Shown: piece after piece, positions 8,070 through 62,514 of the stretch | How the letters are laid out: each line of letters begins with the position of its first letter | Numbering within the stretch: the stretch's first letter is position 1 | Sequence record: OM319461.1 | Strand: one strand, 5' to 3' | Length of the DNA stretch: 64,000 nt | Program-made: the position numbers and the translations under genes | The notes under the pieces: model-generated | Seen by the model: the letters and a program-made list of their open reading frames with translations, nothing else | Database searches by the model: none | What the model was told of the DNA's origin: nothing

Positions 8070-8071
8070 TG

Positions 8072-9764: not shown

Positions 9765-9810
9765 CAGCGACTCATCAAGGGCTCTCGAAAGAACCCTTTG
9801 TGAGTGACTG
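9765..9810 (-). promoter_or_regulatory. long intergenic RNA hairpin without U tract (processing/stability site?)
   Basis: CAGTCACTCA-CAAAGGGTTCT-TTCG-AGAGCCCTTG-ATGAGTCGCTG. Confidence 0.6.
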
Positions 9811-10053: not shown

Positions 10054-10078
10054 AGTTGGTTTCTCTATGGTTGGTTGA

Positions 10079-11624: not shown

Positions 11625-11638
11625 GGTTGGTTTCTCCA

Positions 11639-11694
11639 TTGGTTAAAATAATATTCATAGGAGCCTCTCGCAAGAGACTCTGAGTATATTACTT
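11639..11694. repeat. 56-bp intergenic direct repeat, copy 1
   Basis: Matches 11979-12034 with one mismatch; contains GAGTCTC-TTGC-GAGAGGCTC hairpin on minus. Confidence 0.95.
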
Positions 11695-11958
11695 GACGTA
11701 AGTATTGTATTCGTTGATGATTGCTTCGCGTTTGTCCATAAGGTACACGGCAGGGCCAGTGGCGGCATCTGCAATACGATCGTATGTGATGATCGAATCT
11801 TGATCCATATGGGCAACCTTTGTGCCATTGTAAACAATAAAGTCACGGTTAGGTGTAACGTGCATACCAAGCTTTTTGAGTTCTTCCAATGCATTCATTT
11901 GGATGTCACCGAAAGATGTTGGGTTTACTTCGTGGTCCCAGTTTAGTAAAGCAGACAT
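11689..11958 (-). CDS. hypothetical protein flanked by the 56-bp repeats
   Basis: AAGGA SD. Confidence 0.75.
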   Translation of the reverse strand: MSALLNWDHEVNPTSFGDIQMNALEELKKLGMHVTPNRDFIVYNGTKVAHMDQDSIITYDRIADAATGPAVYLMDKREAIINEYNTYVK

Positions 11959-11978
11959 AATGTTTTCCTTTCAACAAG

Positions 11979-12034
11979 TTGGTTAAAATAATATTCATAA
12001 GAGCCTCTCGCAAGAGACTCTGAGTATATTACTT
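11979..12034. repeat. 56-bp intergenic direct repeat, copy 2
   Basis: Matches 11639-11694. Confidence 0.95.
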
Positions 12035-12329
12035 AGTAGTTAGACGTTAGCATCTCGCAGTCGTAACCATCGTTTTCAAGTTTTGTGATGAACTCTGCGA
12101 TAGGCGTAAAGATGTCACGTAGTTCTTCTTCGGTAGAATCTGTTTTGAACTCAACCGAATGAATTGCCTTGTAGATAGTGCCATTAGGTGTACGTTCTTT
12201 ACGAACAACCAAACGTTCGCCACCTAGCTTACAATAAGTCAAACCGCCAGATTCTACGATAGAAAGAAGGTCAGTAACTTTAAGGATGATTGTGTGAACG
12301 ATGCGAGATTTAGGTGCTACTGTAGTCAT
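12033..12329 (-). CDS. hypothetical protein
   Basis: AAGGA SD. Confidence 0.75.
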   Translation of the reverse strand: MTTVAPKSRIVHTIILKVTDLLSIVESGGLTYCKLGGERLVVRKERTPNGTIYKAIHSVEFKTDSTEEELRDIFTPIAEFITKLENDGYDCEMLTSNY

Positions 12330-20717: not shown

Positions 20718-22835
20718 TTAAACGAAGTCTAGGCTATCTAAATCGTCTTCTGAGACGTCAGTGTCTAGATCCCCAGTTAGGTAGTCTGTAATTTCTTCTT
20801 CTTGTGGTGCTACCTGTGTTGAATCAGAACTTAGCCAACCGGACGTAAAGATCCATGGTAGCGGGTTTTCTGTCTGGTCAGGGAACGGAATACCCATTTG
20901 AACAGTAGACATACGAACGTTCGCAATGTAGCGCACAAAGCGCTTGATGTAGTCCGCATTAAGACCAATCAATGAACCGTGTTGGAAAAGATGGTCTGCC
21001 CAATCTTCTTCGTTCTGTACTGCTTGTAGGAAGATACCTTTGAACTCATCAAAGTTCTCATCCCATGCTTCTTTCCATAGCGGTGCTTTACGCAGGACAT
21101 TGATCATGTACTCAGTGCCCTTAAGATGGAGTGCCTCGTCCCTGGCGATCAAACGAATGATGTTACCGTTACCGCGCATCTTTTTCTTTTCTGCAAAAGC
21201 AAAGCTACAAGCAAAGCTCACGTAGAATGCAATCGCTTCCAATGCGTTAACCGTAACCAATGCTTTCAGGACATGGTAACGGTGTTTGTGCATAAACTCT
21301 TCGCTTGGAGTTTCACCGCGATTGAGAATATTGCGACGCTCAGTATTCATGTCGATACATTCGTTGTATGCAGCCGTAAAGAATTCAGCACGTTTGATGA
21401 TTGCAGGGTTAACTGTAATGTCAGAAAGAATTTCTTCTGGGTGGTTAACTAGGTTGCGGATGATGTGCGTGTAAGAACGAGAATGGATCGTGTTACCTGT
21501 AACAGAAACAACGCCATTATATCGAATCAAGAAAGCACCAGTCGAAGTTTCAAGGCAGCGAACCTTGCCTTTATAAGGAACAATTTCTTTCTCAATGGAT
21601 TGGCCATCTTTGGTGTGTCTGGCGACCACATTGATTTCATATACATCCGCATAGGTTTCTTTTCTCTCGTCTTTTCGGACTGCTAAACGAGGAGAGCGTC
21701 CACATAGAGAAGACACGGCCTGTACAATATCGGCATTTTCTTTAACTGTTGTAGTATAACAGAAAGTAGTGCCTGCGTCTTGATGGAAGCGATGACCATC
21801 CCAGTGTGAAACTTCTTCCAGGAACGATTCTGCCCATGGTAAGTTAATCTCTCCTAGTTTGACCCATGAGAAAGTTTTTGGGTCAGGAACATCCGAAAGA
21901 AGTTCGATTGGAATTGAAACCTTGAAGCGTTTTTGGTCGTCTCTCTTGTTATCTGTTAGCTCTGTCAGTTCAAAGCCGCCGTCCAAACAGATTTCTTTTA
22001 GTCGCTCAATCTTACGTTCTTTTTGGAAGCTGAACCAGAATGGAATAGTGCCGCATTTTTCACCGGTGTATCTATTCGATTTAGTTCCATCAGCTTGCAG
22101 TGCAATCAGGAAACGCTCAAGAGGAGTAAGAATTGACGAAGCCTTTTCATTGTACTTAATGAAACCACTGATCGGTGCCAAGTGATGCGCTGCGTATTCT
22201 TGTCGACCAGCTTCATTGAAATAGCGTTTCTGAGTACCATCGTTGCGACGATCGCGATGAATAACCGGCATTCGGTGGTTAGGTGTGACCAGCTGATCAA
22301 ACTGTTTTCCGTTCTTGGATTTGAAATGGACAATGTCACCTTCTACGTCATACTCAGGAACGCGCTTTGGATGTTCGAAGTGAACACTGTCGTCGTCTAG
22401 GTCATAAACTAGACACTGATCTTCGACTGTCACGTCGGCCATGTCCTTCCATCCAGATGTAGTTAGTACTTCTGTACCTTCTGCCAGGCATTCGGAGAAT
22501 GACCAAGTTTCAATCCACGTTTCTAATTCAGGAATAGAAGCAAGCTCAAGGAAAGCCAAGTTAGGACTGCGACCTTGAATAGAATCCAATAGCGTTTGGT
22601 ATTTCAAGTTTTCAGTGAAGATAAAGCGCTCGTGGTCTGTCATCCCTTCAAAGTCAATGCGGTCTTTGGTGATGTTGATTTCTTCAGGTCGCCAGAAGAA
22701 TGCAAGTTGACGGCTAATCAGGCGCTCGAACTCAGGATGTGTCTGTTCATCATAGCGTGCTGTGCTTACTGGTTCACCAAGAAACATTGGTTGGTTAAGG
22801 TAGTCGGTTGGGCCTGACTTAAATACATCTACCAT
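20718..22835 (-). CDS. nrdB: class Ia ribonucleotide reductase beta subunit, intein-containing
   Basis: FFWRPEE, WSFSE|TIHSRSY, EAIAFYVSF, IARDEALH; 372-aa extein after removing intein. Confidence 0.95.
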   Translation of the reverse strand: MVDVFKSGPTDYLNQPMFLGEPVSTARYDEQTHPEFERLISRQLAFFWRPEEINITKDRIDFEGMTDHERFIFTENLKYQTLLDSIQGRSPNLAFLELASIPELETWIETWSFSECLAEGTEVLTTSGWKDMADVTVEDQCLVYDLDDDSVHFEHPKRVPEYDVEGDIVHFKSKNGKQFDQLVTPNHRMPVIHRDRRNDGTQKRYFNEAGRQEYAAHHLAPISGFIKYNEKASSILTPLERFLIALQADGTKSNRYTGEKCGTIPFWFSFQKERKIERLKEICLDGGFELTELTDNKRDDQKRFKVSIPIELLSDVPDPKTFSWVKLGEINLPWAESFLEEVSHWDGHRFHQDAGTTFCYTTTVKENADIVQAVSSLCGRSPRLAVRKDERKETYADVYEINVVARHTKDGQSIEKEIVPYKGKVRCLETSTGAFLIRYNGVVSVTGNTIHSRSYTHIIRNLVNHPEEILSDITVNPAIIKRAEFFTAAYNECIDMNTERRNILNRGETPSEEFMHKHRYHVLKALVTVNALEAIAFYVSFACSFAFAEKKKMRGNGNIIRLIARDEALHLKGTEYMINVLRKAPLWKEAWDENFDEFKGIFLQAVQNEEDWADHLFQHGSLIGLNADYIKRFVRYIANVRMSTVQMGIPFPDQTENPLPWIFTSGWLSSDSTQVAPQEEEITDYLTGDLDTDVSEDDLDSLDFV
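21492..22490 (-). mobile_element. 333-aa intein with LAGLIDADG-type endonuclease
   Basis: Starts CLAEGTEV, ends VSVTGN, +1 Thr; FLIALQADG and FLEEVSHWDG motifs. Confidence 0.92.
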
Positions 22836-49290: not shown

Positions 49291-49363
49291 ATGTTTTAAA
49301 TGATCACAACAAATTTTATGCTGCGAGTGCAGCTTAATTACGTAATTGACAGGAGTAACTCCC

Positions 49364-50359
49364 ATGCGGAATACATCATTTCCAATTCGTTACTTGGTGG
49401 CTAAAAAAGAACCAGACGATCCAGATAACTCAACCGGCCGCATGATCGCAGACTCGGTGAATGGTCTGATTGACTTGGTTGGTGCACTGGAAGATAATTC
49501 CAGTTGGCCAGATCCAGACCCTTCTGTGGTGGTAAGCAAAGTACATAACTCTGATTACCCATACTTGGCAGGATCTGAGATCCGCACTGCTTTTGGTTAT
49601 TTCCGTTGTATTTCCAACGTACCTGCCAACAGTAACATTAGTTTGACCAACCGTAACTTTTGGGCTTTAACCCACATGCCTGCTGACGGCGGTGCTGCTT
49701 ATGGCGGCATCTATGATGAAGTAAACGGATACCTTGCCAACACAGCAACAGTACGTCTAACGCCGGACAATGTGATTGTCATGCGTGCGCTGGAAGACAT
49801 CGATCCAGGTACACCGTTTGATCCTGCCCAGTGGCAAGTAGACGCTACATACGACCGTGGCGGCATGCAAGACTGGTCTGGTACCTTTGATGATACTGCA
49901 ACATACGACGCTGGTGTTTTTGTAACATACAACGATGGTGTTTATGTATCTAAGGACAAGATCGAAACAGCAGGTCCATTTGACCCTACAGAGTGGGATT
50001 CGGTTTTCCAAGTGAATACCACGACTCTTTTTAACATCAAGTGCTTTATTCAAGACACCACCGATGATGATGAAGAGATCTTTATTGAAGTTGTTACACA
50101 AGACTTTGTCTTTAAGCAAAACTTCCCTAACTCAGTTGCCGTTGCAGCTACAGCTGCCGAAGCAGATACCTCTCTGGTTATCTTGCATGGTGTAACCCAG
50201 ATTGGTACTATCAACTTTGCTGCTGGTAGTACTTCAGGTACGTTTGTTTCTACCGGCGACGTTTCAGTAACAACTGGCGATCTAATCGCTCTAAAACAAA
50301 ACGGTACCGCTGACAAAACACTGGCTAACATTTCCATTACTTTGGAGGGCTTGATGTAA
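49364..50359 (+). CDS. tail-fibre-associated protein with CBM5/12-like repeats
   Basis: AGGAG SD; YDAGVFVTYNDGVY..FDPTEW modules; N-terminus homologous to 60384 gene. Confidence 0.75.
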   Translation: MRNTSFPIRYLVAKKEPDDPDNSTGRMIADSVNGLIDLVGALEDNSSWPDPDPSVVVSKVHNSDYPYLAGSEIRTAFGYFRCISNVPANSNISLTNRNFWALTHMPADGGAAYGGIYDEVNGYLANTATVRLTPDNVIVMRALEDIDPGTPFDPAQWQVDATYDRGGMQDWSGTFDDTATYDAGVFVTYNDGVYVSKDKIETAGPFDPTEWDSVFQVNTTTLFNIKCFIQDTTDDDEEIFIEVVTQDFVFKQNFPNSVAVAATAAEADTSLVILHGVTQIGTINFAAGSTSGTFVSTGDVSVTTGDLIALKQNGTADKTLANISITLEGLM

Positions 50360-51708
50360 TGAGTTTTCTTTTCATCTTTAACGAGTCTCATGGCTTTACG
50401 ACAGAAGCTGGAGTAGGTAATACCGATCACGACCAACGTGTGATACTGAATCCGATCTATCCTCAGTTTCGTGATCCAATGTTCAGTCGTGGTCACGCAC
50501 AGACAGGCAGTCACGCTCTTGGCAAAGGATGGTTTGTAACCGAACCACCTGCGAATACCTCATCGGATATCTGGTTCCATTTTCGTTCTCTTGTTTTGTC
50601 TTCTGGTTCATCAGCTTGGGCATTTACGACTCCTGCTGGTACAGGTCGTCATTTTGAATTGCGGATAGAAAACAGCAGAGCGAGAATTGTCGACTTTGCT
50701 GGTCGTGATGCCTCGGTGGATATAACTGGCTCAGGCGACCAATCGGATTTCGACGTCAAAATCAACTTCGGTACGGGTGCCTTTGAAATTTTCCAAGATG
50801 GTTTATCTAAAGGTAGCGGTACACACTCATGGATCGTTGACATGGGTCTAGACTGTTATCTTAAGTCTGGTCTTCGTGGGGCTGCAAGTACAGCGTTTAC
50901 CGAGATGATCATCACCGAAGCCAAACCTACGATTGGTATGCGCGTCGCTACGCTTGCTCCAGAAGCAGCTGCGTCAGACAATAACCTCGAAGGTGATATT
51001 GCGACAGTTAATGAAGTATCGCTAAGTAACGACGGTATGACTACAGATGGTGCTGGTAACTTTATGTTTGACTATACCGACATTGATGCAGGCATTGACA
51101 TGAGTCAGTACAACATCGCAGCTGTAACGGTATCTACTGTCTCTACGGCCGACGAAACATTTGTTGACAAGTTCGTACAGAACGCAGTTCGCATTAATGG
51201 CAATATCCATGCGCCATATGACTTCCTTGTGTCTGATACGACAAGTGATTCGAAGTCACTAAATACGATCATGACAACAAACCCAGAAACGGGAGCAGCT
51301 TGGACAGAAGCCGACATCAATGCACTAGAAGCTGGCGTTGCTATTGGTCAGCCTGATCTGAAGATTCGTATTGCAAGTGATGGTAGCTTACGCGGATGGC
51401 GTACAGAAGGTAGTACTTTCGGTACCCTGCTTGGTGGTAAAGACGAGTCAATCGTTGATGCATTCTATTATTCTGTGGACAGTGACTACCTGCTACTAAG
51501 TCCAAAGACCGCTAGTGGCGGTTGGCATGGCAGTACGAGCGCACGTATTCATCTGTTGTTTGAAGACGGCACCTACTTTGTTACGAACACCATGTCCTAC
51601 AATACTGGTTTTGGTGGCAGCTTTAAGTCTAGTCGTAACGATACACTAGAAGCCAAGTTCAATGCGAGTGTTGGTCAAGTACTGAATGCTTGGGTAGAAA
51701 CATTTTAA
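50359..51708 (+). CDS. adhesin/fibre paralog 1
   Basis: WFHFR, EMIITEAKPTIGMRV, NPETGAAWTEADINALEAGV. Confidence 0.75.
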   Translation: MSFLFIFNESHGFTTEAGVGNTDHDQRVILNPIYPQFRDPMFSRGHAQTGSHALGKGWFVTEPPANTSSDIWFHFRSLVLSSGSSAWAFTTPAGTGRHFELRIENSRARIVDFAGRDASVDITGSGDQSDFDVKINFGTGAFEIFQDGLSKGSGTHSWIVDMGLDCYLKSGLRGAASTAFTEMIITEAKPTIGMRVATLAPEAAASDNNLEGDIATVNEVSLSNDGMTTDGAGNFMFDYTDIDAGIDMSQYNIAAVTVSTVSTADETFVDKFVQNAVRINGNIHAPYDFLVSDTTSDSKSLNTIMTTNPETGAAWTEADINALEAGVAIGQPDLKIRIASDGSLRGWRTEGSTFGTLLGGKDESIVDAFYYSVDSDYLLLSPKTASGGWHGSTSARIHLLFEDGTYFVTNTMSYNTGFGGSFKSSRNDTLEAKFNASVGQVLNAWVETF

Positions 51709-51718
51709 GGAGTAAGAA

Positions 51719-53077
51719 ATGACTTTCTTATTTATTCAAAACGAAGCCAATGGTGAAGTTTCTGTAAACGACGAAACCACAGCACGTGACCCGCGTCGTG
51801 GCTTGGTAGCTACGGGCGGTGGCTTTGACCCGGTGTTTTCTCGTGGTCGCGTAGAAGTAGAGAGCCGAAACTTTGCATATGCCAGCATGAAGATGACGGG
51901 TGCATCGAGTGACGCTACGGTTCTGTGGATCCATGCCATGATCTATGTTCAGAATGGGTACTCCAATGGCCTCATCAACTTTGGCTATGACGGTGTTCCG
52001 AATGCAGAGGGCTTTCGTATTGAAGGTGGTTCAGGCGAGGTTCGCATTAAGAACCTGAGTGGCACAGAGATCGGCGCTAAAGCAGTCGCAGATGGAAACC
52101 ACCACGTAGACGTAATGCTGAATACAGATACTGGCGCTTTTGCTTTTTATGTCAATGGCGTTAATGAAGCCTCTGGTACTTCGGCAATTGTTTCTAGTTT
52201 CAAACCAAGTCTTTGGGATTCTGTTCAGATTCGTAAAGTATCTGCTGGACGCAGTGCTTCAGAAGTAATCGTTACCGAAGGTGAAATCACCATTGGCATG
52301 CGCGTTATCTCTCTTGTTCCAGAAGCAAACGGCACACATACTGACTTTACTGGCGATGTGAGTACGGTTAGTGAATTGTCACTTAACCCAGACGGCGTGA
52401 CATCTACGGGGGCAGGTAAACACACGTTTGCTTATACTGATCCGGATGCTGCAATCGACTTTAGTACATACGACATTAAAGCAGTCGCTGTGTCTAGTGT
52501 CGCATCAGCTGAAGCTGGCATGGAACAAAACTATATGCGTAATGTCTTGAAAACGGATGCGGATGAACACAGCCCAGTTGTCGGTCGTTTACTAGACACT
52601 GTAAGTGGCCGAGGTTCTTTAAATGAACTCTACGAAGTAAACCCTAACACGGGCGCAGCATGGACAGAAGCAGAAATCAAAGCTGCTGAGTTTGGCGTGA
52701 ATTTAGAAACACCGCCACTATTCGTCCTTCGTTTTGATGTTCGTTATGATGATACAAATATTGCTGGTTACTATGCTTACGGCGTACCTACCGGCGATTT
52801 AGTTGCTTCGATTACGAGTACAGACAGAACTGGTCATGATCGTCCTTATTTTCTTTATGGCGATAAGAGCGACGGCCGTGTTGTCGCGGCATTTGGTACT
52901 GGCGGCGGCAACAAAGTAGACGGTAAGGATTCTATTACTTTCCGCTTTGTTGACGAAGACGGCGCAGAGACTACGAAAGTATTTCCGTACTCGGGTGACT
53001 ATCGAGTTACTGACGCTACCTTGGTTAACTGGTTCCATGCCCGTGCCGGTAAAGCAGTAAGCGTTTACGTAGAATAA
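51719..53077 (+). CDS. adhesin/fibre paralog 2
   Basis: WIHAMIY, EVIVTEGEITIGMRV, NPNTGAAWTEAEIKAAEFGV. Confidence 0.75.
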   Translation: MTFLFIQNEANGEVSVNDETTARDPRRGLVATGGGFDPVFSRGRVEVESRNFAYASMKMTGASSDATVLWIHAMIYVQNGYSNGLINFGYDGVPNAEGFRIEGGSGEVRIKNLSGTEIGAKAVADGNHHVDVMLNTDTGAFAFYVNGVNEASGTSAIVSSFKPSLWDSVQIRKVSAGRSASEVIVTEGEITIGMRVISLVPEANGTHTDFTGDVSTVSELSLNPDGVTSTGAGKHTFAYTDPDAAIDFSTYDIKAVAVSSVASAEAGMEQNYMRNVLKTDADEHSPVVGRLLDTVSGRGSLNELYEVNPNTGAAWTEAEIKAAEFGVNLETPPLFVLRFDVRYDDTNIAGYYAYGVPTGDLVASITSTDRTGHDRPYFLYGDKSDGRVVAAFGTGGGNKVDGKDSITFRFVDEDGAETTKVFPYSGDYRVTDATLVNWFHARAGKAVSVYVE

Positions 53078-53091
53078 CACAGGAGCCCATA

Positions 53092-54489
53092 ATGGCAATT
53101 TTATTTATGCAGAATGAACTGTCTGGTACGGTAACGGATCCTAACTATTACTTTACTAGCAGTGACGTTCGTGCACAGGTTGACACGAATGTGGATGCTT
53201 TTGACCCAGAAGCTCAACGACGTGCAACCCCAAGACCGAACTATAACTTCAGTCCATTTCAAGTCAGTCCTCCTCCAGGTGACACCAAGAAATACTGGGT
53301 GCATTTTCGTTTCAATCAACGCAATGATACCTCGCGTTATGTGAAGTTACAGATCGGAGAACACCCATCGTCACCAAGCTCCAATACGAATACAGTAATC
53401 ACGGTTGGTTATAGCGATGGCCGTATTCAGTGTCAGGCAGCTGGCGAATACTGTTACGAAACAGGCAAATACGACAAAGCTGCACAAACCGAAATCGACC
53501 TACATGTTGATTCGAATACGGGCTACTTCGAAGTATATTGTAACGGTGCTCTAATTAAGGCAGGTACGAGTAACAGTGCCAAGTCTAGTTATAAAATGCT
53601 CTATGTCTGGATTGATGGCGGCAGTACGATTCCAATTAGTGAACTGATCATCACGGAAGACGAGCCTACACTAGGTATGCGTCTATTGACTCTGACGCCG
53701 GACGCTTTGGCATCGGGCAAAATGAGCGGCGATATCTCAGACATTACTGAGATCGGCCTGGATGAAGCAGCTATGGAAACAGAAGTAGCTGGTGCGAATC
53801 TTTTCAGTCTTACCGATGTACACAACACCTTTGCCTCTAATTCTGACCTCATTATTCGTGCGATCGATGTGAAAGCATTGGTAAGCAAGTCGGCTGCATC
53901 TGAACTAGAATATGCCCAGATGACAATCAAGACGGATGGCGAGGTTCACAAAGAACTCGCGCCTAAGCAGATCACTGCTACGTCCCCTGGTCGTGCTCTG
54001 AGTGCTTTCCATGAAGTCAATCCTAAGACAGGTAAGGCATGGACAGTAGCCGAAGTAAATACACTGGAAGCGGGCGTAGAGTTTGCTGGAACAGTTGCGG
54101 ATGTAGACTTCATTCCACACATTACCTTCACTACTGCCAATAGCAATAACAACTACCAAGGTTACCGCAAAGATAGTACTACCTTGAACAATCTTATTTC
54201 TGGCGGTACATGGTACGACGAGAATGGTATTCCGGGTGGATTCATTGAATCAGTGGAATGGCAAAACAACCACGGTCGTGGTATTTTTAAAACCAACGAT
54301 GGCCGCAAGTGGGCTCATGGTCCAAATGGCGTTCGATTGCATTTCCGCGAGACAGATGGAAATATCCAGACCGAACAGATTCCTTGGAATAATACAGCCA
54401 AGGACTATCGTCGTGACGGCGGCTATTTCTACTCATGGCTGAAAGATCGCGCAGGCCAAGTTCTTGAAGTAATGATTGAAGGTTATTAG
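53092..54489 (+). CDS. adhesin/fibre paralog 3
   Basis: WVHFRF, ELIITEDEPTLGMRL, NPKTGKAWTVAEVNTLEAGV. Confidence 0.75.
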   Translation: MAILFMQNELSGTVTDPNYYFTSSDVRAQVDTNVDAFDPEAQRRATPRPNYNFSPFQVSPPPGDTKKYWVHFRFNQRNDTSRYVKLQIGEHPSSPSSNTNTVITVGYSDGRIQCQAAGEYCYETGKYDKAAQTEIDLHVDSNTGYFEVYCNGALIKAGTSNSAKSSYKMLYVWIDGGSTIPISELIITEDEPTLGMRLLTLTPDALASGKMSGDISDITEIGLDEAAMETEVAGANLFSLTDVHNTFASNSDLIIRAIDVKALVSKSAASELEYAQMTIKTDGEVHKELAPKQITATSPGRALSAFHEVNPKTGKAWTVAEVNTLEAGVEFAGTVADVDFIPHITFTTANSNNNYQGYRKDSTTLNNLISGGTWYDENGIPGGFIESVEWQNNHGRGIFKTNDGRKWAHGPNGVRLHFRETDGNIQTEQIPWNNTAKDYRRDGGYFYSWLKDRAGQVLEVMIEGY

Positions 54490-54501
54490 GAGATTTAATT
54501 T

Positions 54502-55824
54502 ATGGCTGTTTTAGCTATCCTAGGTGATGTTACACCTATCGTTGCTTCTGCTGACTACCTGGGTTCTGGTGACCCACGTACACGCCTAGAGGCATCTAAC
54601 CTACCTGGTTCTTTTGACAAAGTAGAATTTGAATCAGGTCAAACAGTTAAGTTTGCTGAAAATGTTCCTAAAGATATTTGGATCCACTTCCGCTATGCCA
54701 ATAACGGTGCTTCACTCAATGCAACGGCACAGTTTAGTTTGGTTGCCAATGACGGTACGTACAAACTGCGTATCGGTTCTGGTGGTGGAGATCAATTCTT
54801 CCTTAATGCCCAGCAGCCTGGCGGCGGTACGGCAAGTGCACCAGCACAGACTGCGGCAGTTGCGGACATAGACGTCCATTTCTACAATAACCGCGTGACA
54901 TTCTACGTGGATGGAAACCAAATCCATGATACTACTTTCTCGATCGTCAATGCAACGTTTAATAGCATTGCACTGGTGACACACCAACCAGACGTGAGTG
55001 AAGTAATCATTGCTGACGAAGATACTCGTGGTTGGCGACTAGCCAAGCTAGATCCAGAAGCAGCTGGTAGCTTCGATGAGTTTGGTGGTATTGTAGATAG
55101 CATTAACACTGAAGACCTTACTGCGGACTCTGTAAGCGCTGATGGTCCAATGAAACAGTCTTTCCAATACTCTGACTTTAGTACAGATGCAAACGCCGCT
55201 GGACTACAAGTTCATTCATTGGTACTTGGCTCTGTTGTTAACACTGCTGGTAATCCTGCTGCCCCTATATTCCGCCACATGGTTACGAATGGCACGGATG
55301 TTGGCTACGGTCCAAATGCATCTGCCCCTGATGCCGACGGTGCTCTAGCTCCGCAATTAGACATTATGGAAGTTAACCCACTGACAGGCAATGCTTGGAC
55401 AATGGCGGAAATCGATGCTCTTGAGTTTGGTGCAGAGTCTTTCTTGTGGGACATGCGTATTCGTGACTTTGGTGCAAGTGGTTCATTGTATGGCATCAAG
55501 AAAGCTTCTGGCTTCTCAGAAGCCTACGACAAGAACCCGGCTGCCGGCTATACTCAGTTCGAATACTTTTACGAACAAAGCGACAAAGTAGTGATTCAGG
55601 CCACCACAGAAACCGTCAGTGCATGGGGTGACAACATCGTGGTGCTCATCAAGGGTGCCGATACAGACGAGATCTTCTCTTTCAAAGCGAAGCGCAATGG
55701 TGGTACTATCGGTGACCGCGAATACTGGGAAACGACCAATGGCGATCCAGAAGCAGCAAAGGTTCGTTCCATGATGTCAGCTAACGCTACAACTGGTCTT
55801 TGGATTTTTGTCCGAGCAGCTTAA
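54502..55824 (+). CDS. adhesin/fibre paralog 4
   Basis: WIHFRY, EVIIADEDTRGWRL, NPLTGNAWTMAEIDALEFGA. Confidence 0.75.
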   Translation: MAVLAILGDVTPIVASADYLGSGDPRTRLEASNLPGSFDKVEFESGQTVKFAENVPKDIWIHFRYANNGASLNATAQFSLVANDGTYKLRIGSGGGDQFFLNAQQPGGGTASAPAQTAAVADIDVHFYNNRVTFYVDGNQIHDTTFSIVNATFNSIALVTHQPDVSEVIIADEDTRGWRLAKLDPEAAGSFDEFGGIVDSINTEDLTADSVSADGPMKQSFQYSDFSTDANAAGLQVHSLVLGSVVNTAGNPAAPIFRHMVTNGTDVGYGPNASAPDADGALAPQLDIMEVNPLTGNAWTMAEIDALEFGAESFLWDMRIRDFGASGSLYGIKKASGFSEAYDKNPAAGYTQFEYFYEQSDKVVIQATTETVSAWGDNIVVLIKGADTDEIFSFKAKRNGGTIGDREYWETTNGDPEAAKVRSMMSANATTGLWIFVRAA

Positions 55825-55873
55825 GTTTAACTGAGGGAGTAAACCTCCCTCTCCTTTTGGAGAAAACAAAATG
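55822..55873 (+). repeat. about 50-bp intergenic repeat with hairpin, copy 1
   Basis: TAAGTTTAACTGAGGGAGTAAACCTCCCTCTCCTTTTGGAGAAAACAAAATG. Confidence 0.9.
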
Positions 55874-57172
55874 TCAATTCTTTTAACAGTTAACCCTGCT
55901 TCACTGCCGGTTACTGCTGGTCAAGCTTATTCAGCCAATGACATTCGTACACTTGCTGTAGATGCTACGGCCGACGACACAATGACAAACTGGAAGTTTC
56001 CAGATTGTAACTCTAAGGCACATAGTCGCTTATCAATGAAATCCACTCCAACGAGTACGTTGTGGTTCCATGCGCGCGTCAAGCGCACAGTTAGTTCTTT
56101 TGAGATAGGCGTTGAGTTTTATGGCCAGCCAAGCGGCTATTCCTCTACCTATAAAGACTACTGGGGGCTACAGGTTACCCCATGGTTTATGATGCATACG
56201 CGAAACCAGACACAGCAGAATAACCAGAGCTTTAGTGGTACATTCCCTGCCGAGGGTTCTGACTGGTTTGATTTTGATTTAGAAATGGGTTCTGGCAAGG
56301 TTTACATCAACGGTAGCTTGGAGCATGATTACTCTGGAAGTTACATACTGGGTACTGACTCCAGTGCTTTCCAATTCCGAATCCAAGGTGGCGAGATAAC
56401 AGAAATGGTTGTCGCCAACGAAGATACTCGAAACTGGCGTGTCGCTTCAGAAGTACCAGCCTCGCTTGTTTCTAGTACGTTTAGTGGCGATGTAGTCAAC
56501 ATTCAAACGCCTGGTCTGACCAAAGATGGTTTGAGTTCTGGCGGTGCCGGTGCAGAGTTTGTGGCCAAGATGCCTGTTGTCCCTGGTGGTTACAAAGTAG
56601 CTGGTCATACAATCAATACCATCGCCGAAACAAATGGTACTCCAGAATCACCAATGCTTGCTTATATCTTAGACGGCAACCTGCTAGGTTTGCATAGTAC
56701 AGACAGTGATGGTGAAAATGTCCCTAACTCGTTTGTGCATGAGACCAAACCATCGGATGGTTCCAACTGGTCGACTGCTGATTTATCAGAACGAGAGATC
56801 ACAGTAATCAACCCAGTTGAACACTACTTCAACACTGCGCAGATTACAAGTGGTGTCTATGGTACTGGTGGTGCGGCACAATTTGTCAAAGGCGGCGAAT
56901 GGGATGGCGGTGGTGCTATTGAACTACAGCATGCTTATAGTGCACGTAACCTTTGGATCTTCTGTGATGCCGACACCAATCGTAAGTGGGGCACATCGGA
57001 CAAGATTCATGTTTATTACACTCGCCGAGATGTAGCAGGACAACCTACCGTTAACCGCGTCCTAACATGGGATGATACTACGGGTGGCTACAAGTCCGGA
57101 CTGAGCAATGATGACTTTGATGTAATCTCTGCTTCCGGTATGCAGATGAAAATGTACATCCTGCCACTTTAA
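55871..57172 (+). CDS. adhesin/fibre paralog 5
   Basis: WFHARVK, EMVVANEDTRNWRV, KPSDGSNWS. Confidence 0.75.
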   Translation: MSILLTVNPASLPVTAGQAYSANDIRTLAVDATADDTMTNWKFPDCNSKAHSRLSMKSTPTSTLWFHARVKRTVSSFEIGVEFYGQPSGYSSTYKDYWGLQVTPWFMMHTRNQTQQNNQSFSGTFPAEGSDWFDFDLEMGSGKVYINGSLEHDYSGSYILGTDSSAFQFRIQGGEITEMVVANEDTRNWRVASEVPASLVSSTFSGDVVNIQTPGLTKDGLSSGGAGAEFVAKMPVVPGGYKVAGHTINTIAETNGTPESPMLAYILDGNLLGLHSTDSDGENVPNSFVHETKPSDGSNWSTADLSEREITVINPVEHYFNTAQITSGVYGTGGAAQFVKGGEWDGGGAIELQHAYSARNLWIFCDADTNRKWGTSDKIHVYYTRRDVAGQPTVNRVLTWDDTTGGYKSGLSNDDFDVISASGMQMKMYILPL

Positions 57173-57221
57173 GTTTAACTGAGGGAGTAATCCTCCCTCT
57201 CCTTTTTGGGGAAAACAAATG
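57170..57221 (+). repeat. about 50-bp intergenic repeat with hairpin, copy 2
   Basis: TAAGTTTAACTGAGGGAGTAATCCTCCCTCTCCTTTTTGGGGAAAACAAATG. Confidence 0.9.
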
Positions 57222-58496
57222 ACTATTCTAGCAACAATTAGTCCGGGTTCAATCACGATTCCTGCTGGCGATTCGTTCGGACCAGATTCGGTTCGTCAAA
57301 AAGTGGTAGATGTATCCGCAGAGGATACGATGACTAACTGGGCATTAAACGACTGGTCAAGTGCTAGTGATGCCCGTGTGTACTTCCAACAAGCTCACTG
57401 TTCTACTGACGAAGGTATGTGGCAACACACTCGCCTCAAGTGGACTGGCGACGCTGGTCTGCGTATCTTCTACTGGGATGAAACAAAGACTAAGCGCATG
57501 TCCATTAACTTACAGCGTGGCTCTTGTTACGGCGCAAGTATTGGTGGTGGCTCTGGCTCAACAGTTACCTTTACTCCATTCGATCTTAATAAATGGATCG
57601 ACATCGATATCGAGTTTAAGAAGACTGATGGTTGGCGTCTTTTCGCAGATGGTACACAGATCGCATCTGGCGATTTCGCATGGCCTGCTGACTGCAACCT
57701 ATTGAGTTGCACATTTGCAATTCCGACTAACCTGAACCTCACCGAGGGTGTTATTTCAACAACAGACACTCGTGGTTGGCGTATCCAATCAGAAGTACCT
57801 GCTTCTATGGTTCTGAATGGTTTTGCTGGTGATATTGCTGAGCTGCAAACTTTGGCTCCAGACCAAGGTGGTGTAAGTTCCACGGGTGTCGGCTCAACTG
57901 CGAAGTTTGACTTTACCGCTGTACCTACCGACATGAATATTGCGGCTGTTAACTTTTCTACAATCAGTGATACGTCTGGTGCTACTGAGTCGCCTTATCT
58001 TGCACAGATCTTGGAAGAGAATGGCAATCGCCACTTCGTTGGCTTTATTGCGGTTACTGCTGACTCAGAAGACAATCCAACAACGTTTGTTTCTGATGTA
58101 AACCCGACCGATGGTTCCGTCTGGACACCTGCGGTGATCAATGCCTCTACTCTTTCAGTCGAGAATGTACACTATCAAGCTTTCTCTTCTGCGGCAGTAA
58201 GCGGAGGTTATGGTCTTGACTCAGGCGGCGCAGACTGGACGGATGGCACCACGATGAGTATCAAGGTTGACTCAGGTGCACGTACCGTCCGAGTTTTCAA
58301 TAAAGGCGACGATACTGTCAAATACGGAACGGCCGATGATCTTTACCTATGGCTTTGGTTGGACGACTTATCTAAAGAGTTCAAAGGCAAAGTAACATGG
58401 GATGGAAACGGCTATGTGGCCGCTACGGATGATACCAACTACAATATGGTTATTTCCGCCGGCATCAACATGGCAATGACATTTGTTGCACTATAA
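57219..58496 (+). CDS. adhesin/fibre paralog 6
   Basis: WQHTRLK, EGVISTTDTRGWRI, NPTDGSVWT. Confidence 0.75.
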   Translation: MTILATISPGSITIPAGDSFGPDSVRQKVVDVSAEDTMTNWALNDWSSASDARVYFQQAHCSTDEGMWQHTRLKWTGDAGLRIFYWDETKTKRMSINLQRGSCYGASIGGGSGSTVTFTPFDLNKWIDIDIEFKKTDGWRLFADGTQIASGDFAWPADCNLLSCTFAIPTNLNLTEGVISTTDTRGWRIQSEVPASMVLNGFAGDIAELQTLAPDQGGVSSTGVGSTAKFDFTAVPTDMNIAAVNFSTISDTSGATESPYLAQILEENGNRHFVGFIAVTADSEDNPTTFVSDVNPTDGSVWTPAVINASTLSVENVHYQAFSSAAVSGGYGLDSGGADWTDGTTMSIKVDSGARTVRVFNKGDDTVKYGTADDLYLWLWLDDLSKEFKGKVTWDGNGYVAATDDTNYNMVISAGINMAMTFVAL

Positions 58497-58506
58497 GGAG
58501 TAACGC

Positions 58507-60387
58507 ATGAGTACAACAACACCAGAAATTCTTGGTGATTCAGGTACAATTGCCATACTGCATGTCTTTCAAAAAGACGGACCAGTAGACTTAGAGATTA
58601 CTTTAGGTGCCACTACCACGGGTGCCACGTCAATTAACGTGGAAGTTAAGAACCTTGATTTTGGTCTTACTTACGACACACTTGAGTTTACTGGCCTGAC
58701 TAGTACCACGTCAACAGTTACGAAAACAATAACTGTGGCAGGTACAACAGGGGAAGTAGTTGGTTTGGTGGCCAATCAAACAGGCGGTACAAACGTCTGG
58801 GTTGATTCTAGTATTGCAGTGCCAACCACTGGCATTGAGCATGCAACTGCTGGCTCACGTAACATCTGGATGTCGGCTAATACCAGTCTTTATGTTTATG
58901 AACAAAACGCCTGGGTACAGATGGCCAATGATCCTGGCATCAGTGCCATTAGTGCACTTGGTATTGATGCAACGTCAGACAGTGCCCTTGTGGTTGATTC
59001 TGCTGGCAATAAGATCTATCGTGTTACACGTGATGATGTTTGGACCGACGTAACCAATGGCGAAGATGTCTCTACTGTAGACTGTATTGCTGGTACAGGC
59101 GATACTGAAATTGCCATTACTAAAGCAGATGGTTCGATTCGTGTTTATGATGGCTCTGCTTGGACAGACAGAAACGACAACAGTCAACGTGCTTTGTACA
59201 TCCAGTATGACGCTTTCAGTAACTTACGTTATCGTCGAGCTGTGGCCCCGTATGCCGAGAAGACCTGGAGTGGTTCATCCTGGGATGGTGTGTCCGGTTT
59301 TGGTACTGTGACAGCGCTACACTATGCTTTCCGTGGTACTGTACCGTCGGACGACCTTACTGTAGCTGGTATTACTAATGCTGGTAGCAATTGGACGCAA
59401 ACAGAAAACCGCATTCGCTATGGCAATGGCACTGCTCATGTATGGACCAACGACCCAGATCCTTCTGTGATCAATTACCAAGGTGGCTTCCACTTAGGTA
59501 CTGACGAACACATTGTCCATGATGACAAGATCGTTACGGTTGATACGCAATACGAAATCAATTTCGAAGGTCTAAGTGTTACAGAGGTAGTACAGACGAA
59601 TGGTCCACACGTACATCACTTGATGCGTGAAACAATACTGACACCTGATGCTGGTCCTCATGTTCATCACTTGATGCGCGAGGCGATACTTACACCTGTC
59701 TTGGCAAAAGCAACATTGCAGAAGCAAGCAGTATCGGTTGTTATCAAGCCACCACCACCCGAAGTCACACTTCAGAAGCAAGCTGTCTCGGTTGTTGTTC
59801 AACCTAAACCAGCCAATCTGAAACTCCAGAAGCAAACCGTTTCCGTAGTATTGGAACCTTTGCCACCCGAACTAAAACTTCAGAAGCAAACGATCTCGGT
59901 TGTACTGGAAGCTAAACCTGCTGGTCCATACGTTAACCATCTTGTATCGGAAGCCGTACTAAAACCAGATCCAGGCCCAGCTGTAAAACATATTGTTTCG
60001 GAAGCAGTCTTGAAACCTGACCCAGGTCCGGCAATCAAGCATATGGTTTCAGAAGCAGTATTGGTGAAGGCTGAAGAACTGAAGGTATTGAAACAGACAG
60101 CTTATGCGGTATTGAAACCTAAGTCAGGTCCAAATATTCTTAAGCAATCTGGTTATGCGGTACTGAAGCCTAAGACTGGCCCTAACGTACTTAAGCAGTC
60201 TGCTTATGCTGTACTGCGTCCGTCTCTGGTTAACCGAGTACACAAACAGTCCGTTACTGTATTGATGAAGCCTAAGACGGTTGTATCGCTACACAAAGCT
60301 TCTGTGACGGTCCTTGTGCGTACGATTCCGCTTAGGAAGAAACGTCGCTTTGTTTCACAGCATGTCGTGGAGATTAAATCATCATGA
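58507..60387 (+). CDS. fibre-associated protein with C-terminal 17-18-aa repeat array (putative scaffold)
   Basis: Beta-rich N-terminus homologous to 1227-aa protein; 14 tandem repeats. Confidence 0.75.
   Translation: MSTTTPEILGDSGTIAILHVFQKDGPVDLEITLGATTTGATSINVEVKNLDFGLTYDTLEFTGLTSTTSTVTKTITVAGTTGEVVGLVANQTGGTNVWVDSSIAVPTTGIEHATAGSRNIWMSANTSLYVYEQNAWVQMANDPGISAISALGIDATSDSALVVDSAGNKIYRVTRDDVWTDVTNGEDVSTVDCIAGTGDTEIAITKADGSIRVYDGSAWTDRNDNSQRALYIQYDAFSNLRYRRAVAPYAEKTWSGSSWDGVSGFGTVTALHYAFRGTVPSDDLTVAGITNAGSNWTQTENRIRYGNGTAHVWTNDPDPSVINYQGGFHLGTDEHIVHDDKIVTVDTQYEINFEGLSVTEVVQTNGPHVHHLMRETILTPDAGPHVHHLMREAILTPVLAKATLQKQAVSVVIKPPPPEVTLQKQAVSVVVQPKPANLKLQKQTVSVVLEPLPPELKLQKQTISVVLEAKPAGPYVNHLVSEAVLKPDPGPAVKHIVSEAVLKPDPGPAIKHMVSEAVLVKAEELKVLKQTAYAVLKPKSGPNILKQSGYAVLKPKTGPNVLKQSAYAVLRPSLVNRVHKQSVTVLMKPKTVVSLHKASVTVLVRTIPLRKKRRFVSQHVVEIKSS
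59602..60330 (+). repeat. 14 tandem coding repeats of about 51-54 bp
   Basis: GPHVHHLMRE.. x2, LQKQ.VSVV x4, H.VSEAVL x3, LKQ..YAVL x3, HK.SVTVL x2. Confidence 0.9.
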
Positions 60388-60869
60388 GTGATATCCAATA
60401 CATCGTATCGACCGATGCTCCAGAAAACCCATTAAACAGTACAGGTAAAGACTTGGCACTGGTGGTCAACACCATCATCGATTTAACAGGTGCATTGATT
60501 GATCGTAACTCTGAACCACCAATCAATCCGGACGTCAATACTTATACGGCGTTTAACAATAATATCAGTTATTCGTTTGGTGACGAAATCCGAACACCCA
60601 AAGGGTACTTTCGTGCAATTCAGGACATTCCTGTAAATCCAGGATATGGTTTTGCTAATATGAATGCCTGGCTTGTGTTCTATGTTCCGAATATTGATGG
60701 TAAGCCTTTTGCTGGTTTACATACACCCGGTTTCCAATATCCAAAGGGTGTTTACCTAGCCAAGATCGAAGGTAGCAACATGCGTGTTCTGCGCACAGTA
60801 AACGACATCGAGCAAGGTTCTTTGTTTGTTGAAGCTGACTTTGTTCAAGAATACAGCTATACACTTTAA
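60384..60869 (+). CDS. fibre-associated protein, paralog of 49364 N-terminus
   Basis: NSTGKDLALVVNTIIDLTGAL / GDEIRTPKGYFRAI vs NSTGRMIADSVNGLIDLVGAL / GSEIRTAFGYFRCI. Confidence 0.75.
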   Translation: MSDIQYIVSTDAPENPLNSTGKDLALVVNTIIDLTGALIDRNSEPPINPDVNTYTAFNNNISYSFGDEIRTPKGYFRAIQDIPVNPGYGFANMNAWLVFYVPNIDGKPFAGLHTPGFQYPKGVYLAKIEGSNMRVLRTVNDIEQGSLFVEADFVQEYSYTL

Positions 60870-60878
60870 GGAGTAGAA

Positions 60879-61523
60879 ATGCATCACGAGTTATTCATTG
60901 TTCGTGTTGTGGGTTACAACGGGGTGGTTTTCACCCCGACTAACCTATACATTACGAACTCCTTTATGTATCATCGCTATGTGGAAAACGCCGTTTACAA
61001 CTACCGCGAAGGTATTGAGTTTCTTGTCGACTCTATCGAGGATAACGAAGATCGCGGGGTGCTTGTGCTTAATGGCGATACGGCCACATATCGTGACGGT
61101 GAAGGTTTGGGTACATCTCCAGTTAAAGTTTATACTGCGCTGATTCCGCAATTCGACAATACAACTGAATATGCGAATGAGGACGTCGTTTACTTTTCTG
61201 GACGTGCCTATTTCCGTAACCGTGCTGGTTCGGGTAACTGGAATCGAAACGACTGGACAGAAATCATCGGTGGGCATACTTTAAGTACACTAACGTACTA
61301 TCTGCACTTTGATCTTTCCGGTGGTGACCGACAGTTAGGTGAAGGTACATTCTTCTATGGTGACACACTGGAGTTTGCTGAGAAACCATTCAAGCCTGAG
61401 GAATCATACAAGATAGACACTGGCGAAATTGAAATTGTCAAGGATATCAATGACCGGTTCTTTGAGCAGTTTTATGCCGACTATGCCATTCATGATGGTA
61501 CGGTGTTACACGAAGAATTTTAG
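60879..61523 (+). CDS. fibre-associated protein with CBM5/12-like module
   Basis: FDNTTEYANEDVVYFSGRAY...W; AAGGAG SD. Confidence 0.7.
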   Translation: MHHELFIVRVVGYNGVVFTPTNLYITNSFMYHRYVENAVYNYREGIEFLVDSIEDNEDRGVLVLNGDTATYRDGEGLGTSPVKVYTALIPQFDNTTEYANEDVVYFSGRAYFRNRAGSGNWNRNDWTEIIGGHTLSTLTYYLHFDLSGGDRQLGEGTFFYGDTLEFAEKPFKPEESYKIDTGEIEIVKDINDRFFEQFYADYAIHDGTVLHEEF

Positions 61524-61545
61524 AAAAAAAAAATAAGAAAGAATA

Positions 61546-61569
61546 CCTACCTGCCTTCGGGCAGGTAGG
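61546..61569. terminator. bidirectional terminator between convergent genes
   Basis: CCTACCTGCC-TTCG-GGCAGGTAGG; A-run on left, T-rich on right. Confidence 0.85.
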
Positions 61570-61581
61570 GTTCTATTATCT

Positions 61582-62514
61582 TTACACTGGGAAAGTGTAT
61601 TGAGTTACTTTGGTTTCACCGTCTTCGGTAGCACGTAAAACAACACTAGCGATTGTATCACCAGAACGCTCATAAGTGTAAGACGTGTGACGTTTGTCAG
61701 CGTACTTACCGGTTGTGCGAGATACTTCAGAGATTGTGAAGTTATCGATTAGGTTGTCGTCTGTGTACTCGAAGTTCACAAGTGTAACAACAGGTAGGTC
61801 ATGATGACTAGGAGCAGCCGCCCACTTTTGTAGACCAACATCAGTTAGAATCTGACCATCTTTACGATAAGTACCTGTAGAATCACCATCGACTACCACA
61901 AAGCCGTACTCTTCTTCTTTGATGCTGATGTTCTTGTTTCCATCGCGGTAAACTTCATAGCCGTCACGAGTCTCGACTAGAGAAGCAATAATGTTACGTT
62001 CTGTTTCGTCACCATCGACGCGTGTCTGTTCTACAGCACTAGTCAATGGGAAGCCAGGTAAGCTAGTCTGGATGTACTCCCATTTAGTTACCGCAATGCC
62101 AGAAGACATCGGAGTTTCTTGTTTAACTACTTCACCAGTTTCTTTGTTGATGTACTGTTTGTAAAGTAGACTTTTGTGCATGCCGTGCATAGTATAGACA
62201 ATGATCCATTCTGGGTTAACCGTAACGGTCATGTTGCCACTGATGAACGAATAGTTCTCTGAATCCGTGATTGTAACGTCAGTGATAGTGTCGCCCATGC
62301 GAACAACTTCGTCGCCACACTCGCGCTTAATGTTGAAGAAGTCAAGCAGAGACATTTCTTTAAACACACCGTAAACGTCAAGTGTAGTTAGTAGGCTAGA
62401 AGACATAAAGCTGTCGAATCTACGTGTACCTAATAGAAGATCCAGTAGGCCTGTTTCTACTTTAGTTGCAGCTAGGAATTCGTTTACTTCTTTTGAAAAT
62501 GTTTTAACAGTCAT
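61582..62514 (-). CDS. hypothetical beta-rich protein with YD-like C-terminus (start MTVKTF)
   Basis: FEYTDDNLI, SYTYERSGDTIASV; GGAG SD. Confidence 0.7.
   Translation of the reverse strand: MTVKTFSKEVNEFLAATKVETGLLDLLLGTRRFDSFMSSSLLTTLDVYGVFKEMSLLDFFNIKRECGDEVVRMGDTITDVTITDSENYSFISGNMTVTVNPEWIIVYTMHGMHKSLLYKQYINKETGEVVKQETPMSSGIAVTKWEYIQTSLPGFPLTSAVEQTRVDGDETERNIIASLVETRDGYEVYRDGNKNISIKEEEYGFVVVDGDSTGTYRKDGQILTDVGLQKWAAAPSHHDLPVVTLVNFEYTDDNLIDNFTISEVSRTTGKYADKRHTSYTYERSGDTIASVVLRATEDGETKVTQYTFPV

Follow-up and report, generated by a model that had tools for sequence, protein, structure and literature searches.

Several receptor-binding proteins (RBPs) carried on one particle are a known kind of system in large phages, and the familiar examples include TSP1-4 of CBA120, the depolymerase sets of RaK2 and phiK64-1 and the branched LtfA/LtfB fibres of DT57C. 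Host-recognition proteins usually keep a proximal anchor and swap the distal part, and in T2 and S16 the fibre gene (gp37) is followed by a separate gene for a tip protein (gp38) at a hot spot of host-range recombination. In this article, I will discuss a locus that invites comparison with these systems, namely six tandem paralogous genes, gp65-gp70 (CZP2022_65 to CZP2022_70; 50359-58496, + strand), in a stretch of 64,000 nucleotides (nt) of record OM319461.1, the genome of Vibrio phage C-ZP2022 (287,943 bp, host Vibrio parahaemolyticus); this whole stretch is called the window below, and all positions refer to it and coincide with those of the record. The main new result is that, judged by gene order and sequence similarity, the array is part of a conserved S-F-R module, in which a fibre "stub" (S), a member of a lectin-like protein family (F) and a small R protein are encoded together, and which recurs in phages of quite different morphology.

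The likeness to the multi-RBP arrays lies in tandem paralogs that would be carried on one particle, in conserved attachment parts combined with variable distal parts, and in mosaic exchange; however, those arrays consist mostly of trimeric beta-helix spikes or long fibres, whereas the C-ZP2022 units are predicted to be compact, lectin-like, three-domain proteins, and no similarity to known multi-RBP proteins was found in Pfam, PHROG, PDB sequence or Foldseek searches. The fibre gene followed by a separate gene and the recombination at that site are also reminiscent of gp37-gp38 of T2 and S16, but gp38 is a single small protein, with no array and no sequence or fold relationship to gp65-gp70. 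With the ConA-like lectin/LamG superfamily (PF13385) the N-terminal domain shares the jelly-roll fold and the LamG core strand motif, a likeness at the level of the fold only.

Two further systems are closer in gene order. In the Agrobacterium phages Milano and 7-7-1, the fibre is a trimer with a jelly-roll weakly resembling the S domain as its distal head. The Milano proteins gp125-127 (141-164 amino acids, aa), encoded just 3' of the fibre gene, make up a "garland" that is attached to the distal ends of the fibres, with a T4 gp8-like fold according to the authors, who describe the garland proteins of both phages (PMC10811340, PMC12796354). The stub of C-ZP2022, gp64, resembles the distal jelly-roll of these fibres weakly in the sequence of its C-terminal domain (expect value, E, 0.0015-0.013) and has a GPFDP..W-type repeat motif in common with them, yet the parallel is one of gene order and position, not of homology: the garland partners are unrelated to the 425-465-aa family, and gp125, gp126 and gp127 had no match to the family profile, the C-domain profile, gp64, gp71, gp72 or gp73 at E up to 10. 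Chi and AchV4 (Casjensviridae) are like C-ZP2022 in having a fibre or J-like protein, then an S stub (phrog_7049, "tail fiber"), then three or four family proteins of ~320-400 aa, of which chi_072 is in phrog_2448, while chi_073-075 and AchV4_0025-27 match the family profile. They are unlike it in being ~60-kb siphoviruses with two-domain short forms of only remote similarity and without genes of the gp72/gp73 type, and PDB sequence searches found no modelled position for these family proteins in the published Chi/YSD1 structures.

The six array genes are + strand open reading frames (ORFs) with no stops and no frameshifts, intact both in C-ZP2022 and in the jumbo myovirus vB_pir03 (MT811961.1, host Vibrio harveyi), to which C-ZP2022 is 97.5% identical over the region 49,300-61,600; the region's genes, none of them broken, are called "hypothetical protein" in both records, and the pir03 papers leave the counterparts of gp65-gp70 unannotated (PMC7765460). 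Paralog 1 (gp65, 449 aa) lies at 50359..51708, with N, middle and C domains at approximately 50359-50892, 50893-51348 and 51349-51705; paralog 2 (gp66, 452 aa) at 51719..53077 (51719-52252, 52253-52708 and 52709-53074); and paralog 3 (gp67, 465 aa) at 53092..54489 (53092-53631, 53632-54087 and 54088-54486), these three forming subclass I. Paralog 4 (gp68, 440 aa), the only member of subclass II, lies at 54502..55824 (54502-54990, 54991-55443 and 55444-55821), and subclass III comprises paralog 5 (gp69, 433 aa) at 55871..57172 (55871-56392, 56393-56809 and 56810-57169) and paralog 6 (gp70, 425 aa) at 57219..58496 (57219-57734, 57735-58163 and 58164-58493). A Shine-Dalgarno site precedes every array gene, and the spacers measure -1 to 14 nt, but 46 nt before paralogs 5 and 6.

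A first-pass annotation, made from the sequence without database searches, had proposed six tandem paralogs of 425-465 aa at this place, and the ORFs, blastp and PHROG matches all bear this out. Pairwise blastp scores among the six range from 31 to 169 bits, and the paralogy is far above chance. Paralogs 1-5 independently match phrog_6368 (E 1.7e-15, 1.1e-16, 1e-21, 8e-31 and 2.9e-8, paralog 4 being the best) and paralogs 2 (E 3e-5) and 3 also match phrog_2448; paralog 6 has no PHROG match of its own and is joined to the family via paralog 5 and via the six-paralog and 100-member profiles. A profile search of the 64-kb window with the six-paralog profile found no further ORF, tblastn with paralogs 2 and 5 found no array copies elsewhere in the 288-kb record, a word-based homolog search returned the pir03 ortholog plus one weak match and nothing more, and BONAISHI gave no tblastn match. 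The end-to-end alignment of the six has 16 invariant columns and holds all the features that had been noticed by eye, the short hydrophobic N-terminal strand, W.H.R, the E.II...T.G.R junction and NP.TG..W, as well as the class-specific forms of the junction (TIGMR-type versus DTR.WR-type). Identity between paralogs is 12-45%, from which I take the duplications to be ancient, and by domain it is 16-28% (N), 21-45% (middle) and 12-26% (C). The annotation's picture of a conserved junction and middle domain followed by a divergent C-terminal domain thus holds, with the addition that the N domain is variable too, the middle domain being by these alignments the most conserved part.

The gene directly upstream, gp64 (CZP2022_64, 331 aa; 49364..50359, +), is the stub. 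Its C-terminal part matches the tail-fibre families phrog_7049 (E 3.6e-7) and phrog_972 and contains the ~110-aa S domain, and proteins homologous to this domain are encoded directly upstream of family members in many phages; with one stub as the query, tblastn found it in 207 phage records, many of them annotated as tail fibre. S-domain proteins include those of vB_VpaM_sm033 (320 kb; 499 and 500 aa), the T5-like Vibrio phage VCPH (AP014889; 187 and 123 aa, plus the C terminus of an 820-aa protein), podovirus 1.188.A (128 aa), AchV4 (AchV4_0024, "putative tail fiber"), Chi (chi_071, phrog_7049 at E 8e-131) and L010 and L011, two GTA-like siphophage contigs (240 aa). A profile of 12 stubs searched against the PDB matched 9rkv_M, the 7-7-1 long tail fibre gp015 (E 0.0015), and 8fqc, the Milano tailspike gp124 (E 0.013), both weak matches falling on the C-terminal jelly-roll (chain residues 461-549), and a local hmmsearch found Milano gp124 at E 7e-7 in a small database. 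A central beta-helical shaft (~250 aa) is absent from gp64, which has one CBM5/12-like repeat between its N and C domains.

In Chi-like, GTA-like and T5-like siphoviruses the module stands at the end of the tail gene cluster, and it also occurs in a podovirus, 1.188.A, where the pairing of stub and family gene is present. In VCPH (3199-12317), S, F and R follow each other three times in tandem, directly after pb4 and a collar-like gene, which is the slot of the L-shaped side fibre in T5. The 820-aa VCPH protein mentioned above is annotated "capsid decoration protein" and ends in the tail-fibre S domain (phrog_7049), so that this label is probably wrong. In L010 and L011 the order is tape measure, DUF2460, BR0599 hub, NlpC/P60, a 1200-aa Phage-tail_3 protein, S, F, R (70 aa in L010) and lysis genes; in Chi it is chi_070 (J-like), chi_071 (S) and chi_072 to chi_075 (F), and in AchV4 it is 0023 (J-like), 0024 (S) and 0025 to 0027 (F). 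The map of the jumbo relatives reads [N..S], F x3-6, [R] [N] [T], and three family genes per stub is a common arrangement overall. The family is thus found where genes of tail-fibre-associated proteins are expected, directly 3' of gp64 in C-ZP2022 and elsewhere after J-like, pb4 or stub genes. Among N4-like phages, the Roseovarius Plymouth podovirus RPP1 (FR719956, 4787-8354) has a family gene (orf34) after orf31 and orf32, the latter carrying collagen triple-helix repeats, and both orf31 and orf32 are structural proteins verified by mass spectrometry and assigned by the authors to a tail-associated "second structural module" (PMC4193335).

Protein evidence comes from AchV4, in whose purified virions liquid chromatography-tandem mass spectrometry recovered 13 peptides of the stub 0024, 22 of 0025 and 14 of 0026, while 0027 and 0028 were undetected (PMC7996906). 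The presence of both 0025 and 0026 in the particle fits the suggestion of the first-pass annotation that the members are carried simultaneously, and together with the site 3' of gp64 and the recurrent pairing of stub and family it lends indirect support to a tail-associated role on the virion surface. The similarity of the AchV4 array proteins to the family profile is remote (E 1e-5 to 2e-12).

What kind of proteins might these be? An AlphaFold2 model was made for paralog 1 from an alignment of 100 sequences, with a separate model for the middle and C domains, and it came out with three beta-rich domains at a predicted local distance difference test score (pLDDT) of 90.7 and a predicted template modelling score (pTM) of 0.88, the middle and C domain model reaching a pLDDT of 92.4. 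The predicted architecture is a ConA/LamG-type jelly-roll, a conserved middle beta-sandwich and an optional C-terminal beta domain, in keeping with the three domains that had been drawn from sequence in the first-pass annotation. A signal peptide was considered for the N-terminal hydrophobic stretch and rejected, as the stretch forms one of the beta-strands of the fold (5 residues, pLDDT 93) and lacks a charged n-region. With the whole paralog 1 model, Foldseek matched only ConA/LamG-type jelly-rolls in the PDB (probability 1.0, E down to 1.7e-7), dominated by the lectin-like subdomain of the clostridial neurotoxin binding domain and by NTNH and followed by reelin, the L-type lectin YwfG and NELL. 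This agrees with the lectin/LamG-like N domain proposed earlier, for which Pfam Laminin_G_3 (PF13385) is sub-threshold (paralog 2, 16.3 bits, E 0.012; paralog 4, 14.2 bits; cut-off 27.6; no match for the other paralogs). The global scores are low (TM 0.22-0.27, root-mean-square deviation ~20 Å, identity 6-13%) because only one of the three domains aligns. What the N domain shares with these proteins is a generic jelly-roll fold and not a kinship with toxins; the jelly-roll plus beta-trefoil of clostridial neurotoxin Hc was not recovered as a global superposition, and no sequence matches to it were found.

Foldseek found nothing in the PDB at E < 0.001 for the middle and C model, and PDB sequence searches with the six-paralog profile, the 100-member profile, gp64 and gp71 gave nothing significant, the family having weak profile matches there to lectins and glucanases. 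The fold matches in BFVD come from N4-like roseophages, VpV262 and Casjensviridae and are uncharacterised, one of them, in AchV4, being annotated "virion structural protein"; among these matches, A0A7T3PGU3 (352 aa, Foldseek E 1e-12) appears by its length and annotation to be AchV4_0026. Searched against a library of 1.84 billion proteins, the six-paralog profile found 1,615 cluster representatives at E <= 1e-3 and 525 at E <= 1e-10, a family corresponding to phrog_6368 and phrog_2448 (both of "unknown function", ~330 aa). The majority are 320-340 aa long and span profile positions 1-330 only, so the widespread form has two domains and the 110-130-aa C domain, present in ~30 long representatives, is an add-on. 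The C domains of paralogs 1, 2, 3, 5 and 6 form one homologous family by single linkage and profile comparison (that of paralog 3 links to that of paralog 2 at E 5.6e-6), and the C domain of paralog 4 has no detectable relation to them (hhalign probability 2.7%). Nine columns are near-invariant among the 100 aligned members, M1, W72 and H74 in the N domain and the other six in the middle domain.

The first-pass annotation had divided the array into two subclasses, with paralogs 4-6 in the second, and this had to be revised. Reciprocal blastp against sm033 indicates three old classes, each with its own sm033 counterpart: class I (paralogs 1, 2 and 3) with sm033_a1, sm033_b1 and VCPH_2 as partners, class II (paralog 4) with sm033_a3 and sm033_b2, and class III (paralogs 5 and 6) with sm033_a2. 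The best sm033 partner of paralog 2 is a1 (183 bits) and that of paralog 4 is a3 (107 bits), while paralog 5 pairs with paralog 6 (158-168 bits) and with sm033_a2 (109 bits). The order of the classes is I, I, I, II, III, III in C-ZP2022 and I, III, I, III, III in L012, a closer relative with five genes, no class II and orthologs of paralogs 5 and 6 that are 67% identical to those of C-ZP2022 (measured for paralog 5 against L012_4); sm033 and contig L009 each have two cassettes of three family genes. Two simple schemes were tried on these data and discarded. That every stub bears one set heterotrimer of the three classes is at odds with the class composition in C-ZP2022 and L012, and the six genes do not follow from a simple fusion of two cassettes of three genes when their classes are compared with those of sm033.

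The array has also been subject to exchange. When C-ZP2022 was compared with pir03 over 43.3-61.5 kb in 250-nt windows, against a background divergence of ~0.4%, a tract at 49800..51550 (~1.75 kb, bounds to the nearest 250 nt) stood out with 13-16% divergence, or 25-41 differences per 250 nt, and with sharp edges. Within it lie the distal two-thirds of gp64 and the first ~397 residues of paralog 1; it starts near the boundary of the gp64 N-terminal domain and ends inside the C domain of paralog 1, which is the only paralog strongly diverged from its pir03 counterpart (34 aa differences). The synonymous divergence (dS) is 0.26 for gp64, 0.66 for paralog 1 and 0.01-0.03 for the other eight genes of the island described below, with a ratio of non-synonymous to synonymous divergence (dN/dS) of ~0.06. 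This pattern reads as an import from a diverged relative rather than as local positive selection, and the low ratio suggests that the array genes are under purifying selection. A second cluster, with 12 differences, is smaller and falls at 53050-53299, around the beginning of paralog 3. The array thus combines a conserved middle domain with variable N and C domains, a mosaic tract and a composition that varies between phages.

My preferred reading, to which I would give slightly better than even chances, is that gp65-gp70 are virion proteins of a peripheral fibre apparatus, coupled in function to the S-type head of gp64, with the middle domain serving assembly and the jelly-roll and C domain facing the host. 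In such an apparatus, gp64 would be a short fibre, assumed to be a trimer from the Milano and 7-7-1 fibres, whose N-terminal domain anchors it to the baseplate and whose S jelly-roll is displayed distally; the family proteins would attach to this head, or close to it, by means of the N-terminal strand and the conserved middle domain, and the variable lectin-like jelly-roll and variable C domain would be turned to the cell surface, probably towards surface glycans. Six diverged members of three ancient subclasses would then offer several binding surfaces on one particle, which fits the broad strain range reported for vB_pir03, a phage that lysed 31 of 51 strains of several Vibrio species (PMC7765460). 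The physical coupling of gp65-gp70 to the gp64 head is probable from the recurrent gene order, and the mosaic tract, lying at a site usual for host-recognition genes and distinguishing phages from V. parahaemolyticus and V. harveyi, counts in favour of this reading. The virion location in C-ZP2022, the binding of a ligand and the link to host range are what I infer from these observations, and the terms "adhesin" and "multi-receptor repertoire" used in the first-pass annotation are likewise interpretations of sequence.

Several observations weigh against this reading. The case for docking on the stub comes from gene order alone. In the PDB, the S domain finds only weak matches (E 0.0015-0.013), and the beta-helix of the fibres matched is absent from gp64, while N4-like phages have a family gene without a detectable S stub. 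The AchV4 and Chi proteins are remote members that match mainly in the middle domain; PDB sequence and fold searches found no solved structure containing a family member, and the literature search found no paper mentioning C-ZP2022. The island is remote from the baseplate cluster annotated in the pir03 paper (PMC7765460), and its surroundings are genes of unknown or nucleotide-metabolism function. The mere adjacency of gp64 and paralog 1 could account for their joint exchange. Finally, the conservation of the subclasses and the dN/dS of ~0.06 fit fixed structural roles equally well, and since the subclasses are kept across phages with different hosts, distinct structural positions are a live alternative to distinct receptors.

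That alternative can be stated in full: gp65-gp70 might be structural connectors or scaffolds of the virion rather than receptor binders, tying the fibre tips together or to the baseplate in the manner of the garland or of the T4 gp8 and A511 gp105 connectors, with each subclass at a fixed position. The genes that encode garland proteins on the distal fibre ends downstream of the Milano/7-7-1 fibre with its S-type jelly-roll provide a precedent, but those proteins are of 141-164 aa and without sequence similarity to the family or to gp71-73. The conservation of the three subclasses in C-ZP2022, sm033 and L009 despite their differing hosts, the frequency of family-gene triplets per stub, the strong purifying selection and a middle domain that is the most conserved of the three all suit connectors; however, a lectin-type jelly-roll with a highly variable, optional C domain is more typical of binding modules, and the plasticity of the array (1, 2, 3, 5 or 6 members, in no fixed class order) argues against fixed structural slots. 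Structural and binding roles can also coexist, and on the whole I consider a purely structural role unlikely, although it is the likeliest of the rivals. A much smaller probability goes to tail-fibre assembly factors or chaperones, comparable with lambda Tfa or the T4 gp38/gp57 type, that would be absent from mature particles. Fibre chaperone genes are classically found just 3' of a fibre gene, yet proteins of 425-465 aa with three beta-rich domains are far above the size of known fibre chaperones, six copies for a single fibre gene are hard to account for, and Pfam and PHROGs contain no chaperone family that they match; and although AchV4_0027 and _0028 were undetected in virions, AchV4_0025 and _0026 were found there with good coverage (PMC7996906).

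Less probable again is that the proteins decorate the capsid or neck, as Hoc-like lectin or immunoglobulin-type (Ig) proteins, and stand near a fibre-like gene by chance. Beta-sandwich decoration proteins are common, in N4-like phages the family gene is encoded apart from the main late structural module and has no stub, and the neighbouring 820-aa protein of VCPH bears the annotation already mentioned, but it is precisely this protein that ends in a tail-fibre S domain, and in siphoviruses the family forms the final block of the tail cluster, after the J-like protein. The "second structural module" of the N4-like phages, moreover, is interpreted by its authors as tail-associated (PMC4193335). 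I give least credence to polysaccharide-degrading enzymes of the ConA fold, that is, to depolymerases acting on Vibrio capsule or lipopolysaccharide (LPS), despite weak profile matches to a beta-glucanase (3o5s, E 0.019), an arabinanase and a polyguluronate lyase, and also to 3wvj. Such a fold is indeed common to GH16 and PL7 enzymes, but every match is below significance (E 0.019 or worse), the top fold matches are binding domains, and the near-invariant Trp and His of the N domain (W72 and H74 among the 100 members) are those of the usual LamG core strand. No conserved catalytic constellation, neither an acidic pair nor a lyase triad, runs through the 100 aligned members, and for want of such residues the enzymatic candidate was dropped.

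Around the array, ten + strand genes, gp64-gp73, form an island at 49,364-61,523 between - strand genes and are probably a single operon. Downstream of paralog 6, gp71 (626 aa; 58507..60387, +) has no Pfam, PHROG or PDB matches, and its C-terminal half (approximately residues 360-610) consists of the "R" repeats that match small proteins encoded after family genes elsewhere (sm033, 207 aa; VCPH, 336, 72 and 66 aa; L010, 70 aa; L009, 170 and 224 aa). A 1227-aa protein encoded at 16958-20641 (-), with five DUF285 (BspA-type leucine-rich) repeats, is similar over residues 95-283 to gp71 in the latter's N-terminal part (E 3e-5) and might likewise be a surface or virion protein, one linked to the cassette by a common attachment domain. 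The next gene of the island, gp72 (161 aa; 60384..60869, +), is a stand-alone copy of the anchor-like N-terminal domain of gp64 (phmmer E 4.5e-26; paralogous stretch in gp64, 49364-49843). Its orthologs in sm033 (164 aa) and L009 (161 and 162 aa) occupy the corresponding place in the cassette, and it might serve as an adaptor or compete for the attachment site of the fibre. The final cassette gene, "T", is gp73 (214 aa; 60879..61523, +), which is conserved in this place in L009 and sm033 (214 aa, E 2e-35) and has no Pfam or PHROG family matches. Between gp73 and the convergent - strand gene lies a bidirectional terminator-like hairpin (61546..61569) with a perfect 10-bp stem (7 GC) and T-runs on both strands.

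Hairpins are also found within the array. The 46-nt spacer before paralog 5 (55825-55870) contains a hairpin with a 7-bp GC stem, a 5-nt loop and a U-rich tail (55832..55854, +), and a second copy (57180..57202, +) lies in the 46-nt spacer before paralog 6 (57173-57218), the two spacers being almost identical while the genes that flank them share ~30% amino-acid identity. The element has two matches in the window where chance predicts 0, folds as RNA with -14.8 kcal/mol (z = -1.9), is kept in pir03 but missing from L012, L009 and sm033. One possibility is that it acts as an internal attenuator, or as a site of RNA stability or processing, and so tunes the dosage of the last paralogs. A scan for sigma-70 promoters was uninformative (23 sites versus 22 expected). 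Elsewhere in the window, a ribonucleotide reductase small-subunit gene (20718-22835, -) encodes 704 aa in which the Pfam Ribonuc_red_sm match is split by a ~335-aa insert; this insert matches PHROGs that typically contain inteins and looks intein-like by sequence, and no intein or endonuclease Pfam domain was found in it at E <= 0.001.

In the sources searched, this family, the occurrence of the S-F-R module across podo-, sipho- and myoviruses, and the increase to five or six family genes within one clade of jumbo Vibrio phages appear to be undescribed. A bolder proposal, which I put forward as tentative and rather doubtful, is that S, the lectin-like family and R together are a portable "plug-in" for host recognition used by podo-, sipho- and myoviruses of Proteobacteria, in which a universal jelly-roll fibre head takes interchangeable tips, and that the jumbo Vibrio phages load five or six different tips of three ancient classes on one short fibre, a heteromeric multi-lectin bouquet behind their broad strain range. 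For annotators, the three-gene signature of S, F and R is usable for finding host-recognition loci, and for those who work with Vibrio phages in aquaculture this locus is the one most likely to lie behind differences in strain range, such as the tract that separates C-ZP2022 from pir03. For structural work the family is of interest as a compact and well-predicted lectin-like scaffold, and if its members prove to be connectors, a new kind of fibre-tip scaffold would have been found. And if they do sit at fibre tips, a likely role would be gained for a large "hypothetical" family (~1,600 cluster representatives, PHROG 6368/2448) that is spread over Chi-like, T5-like, N4-like, GTA-like and jumbo phages.

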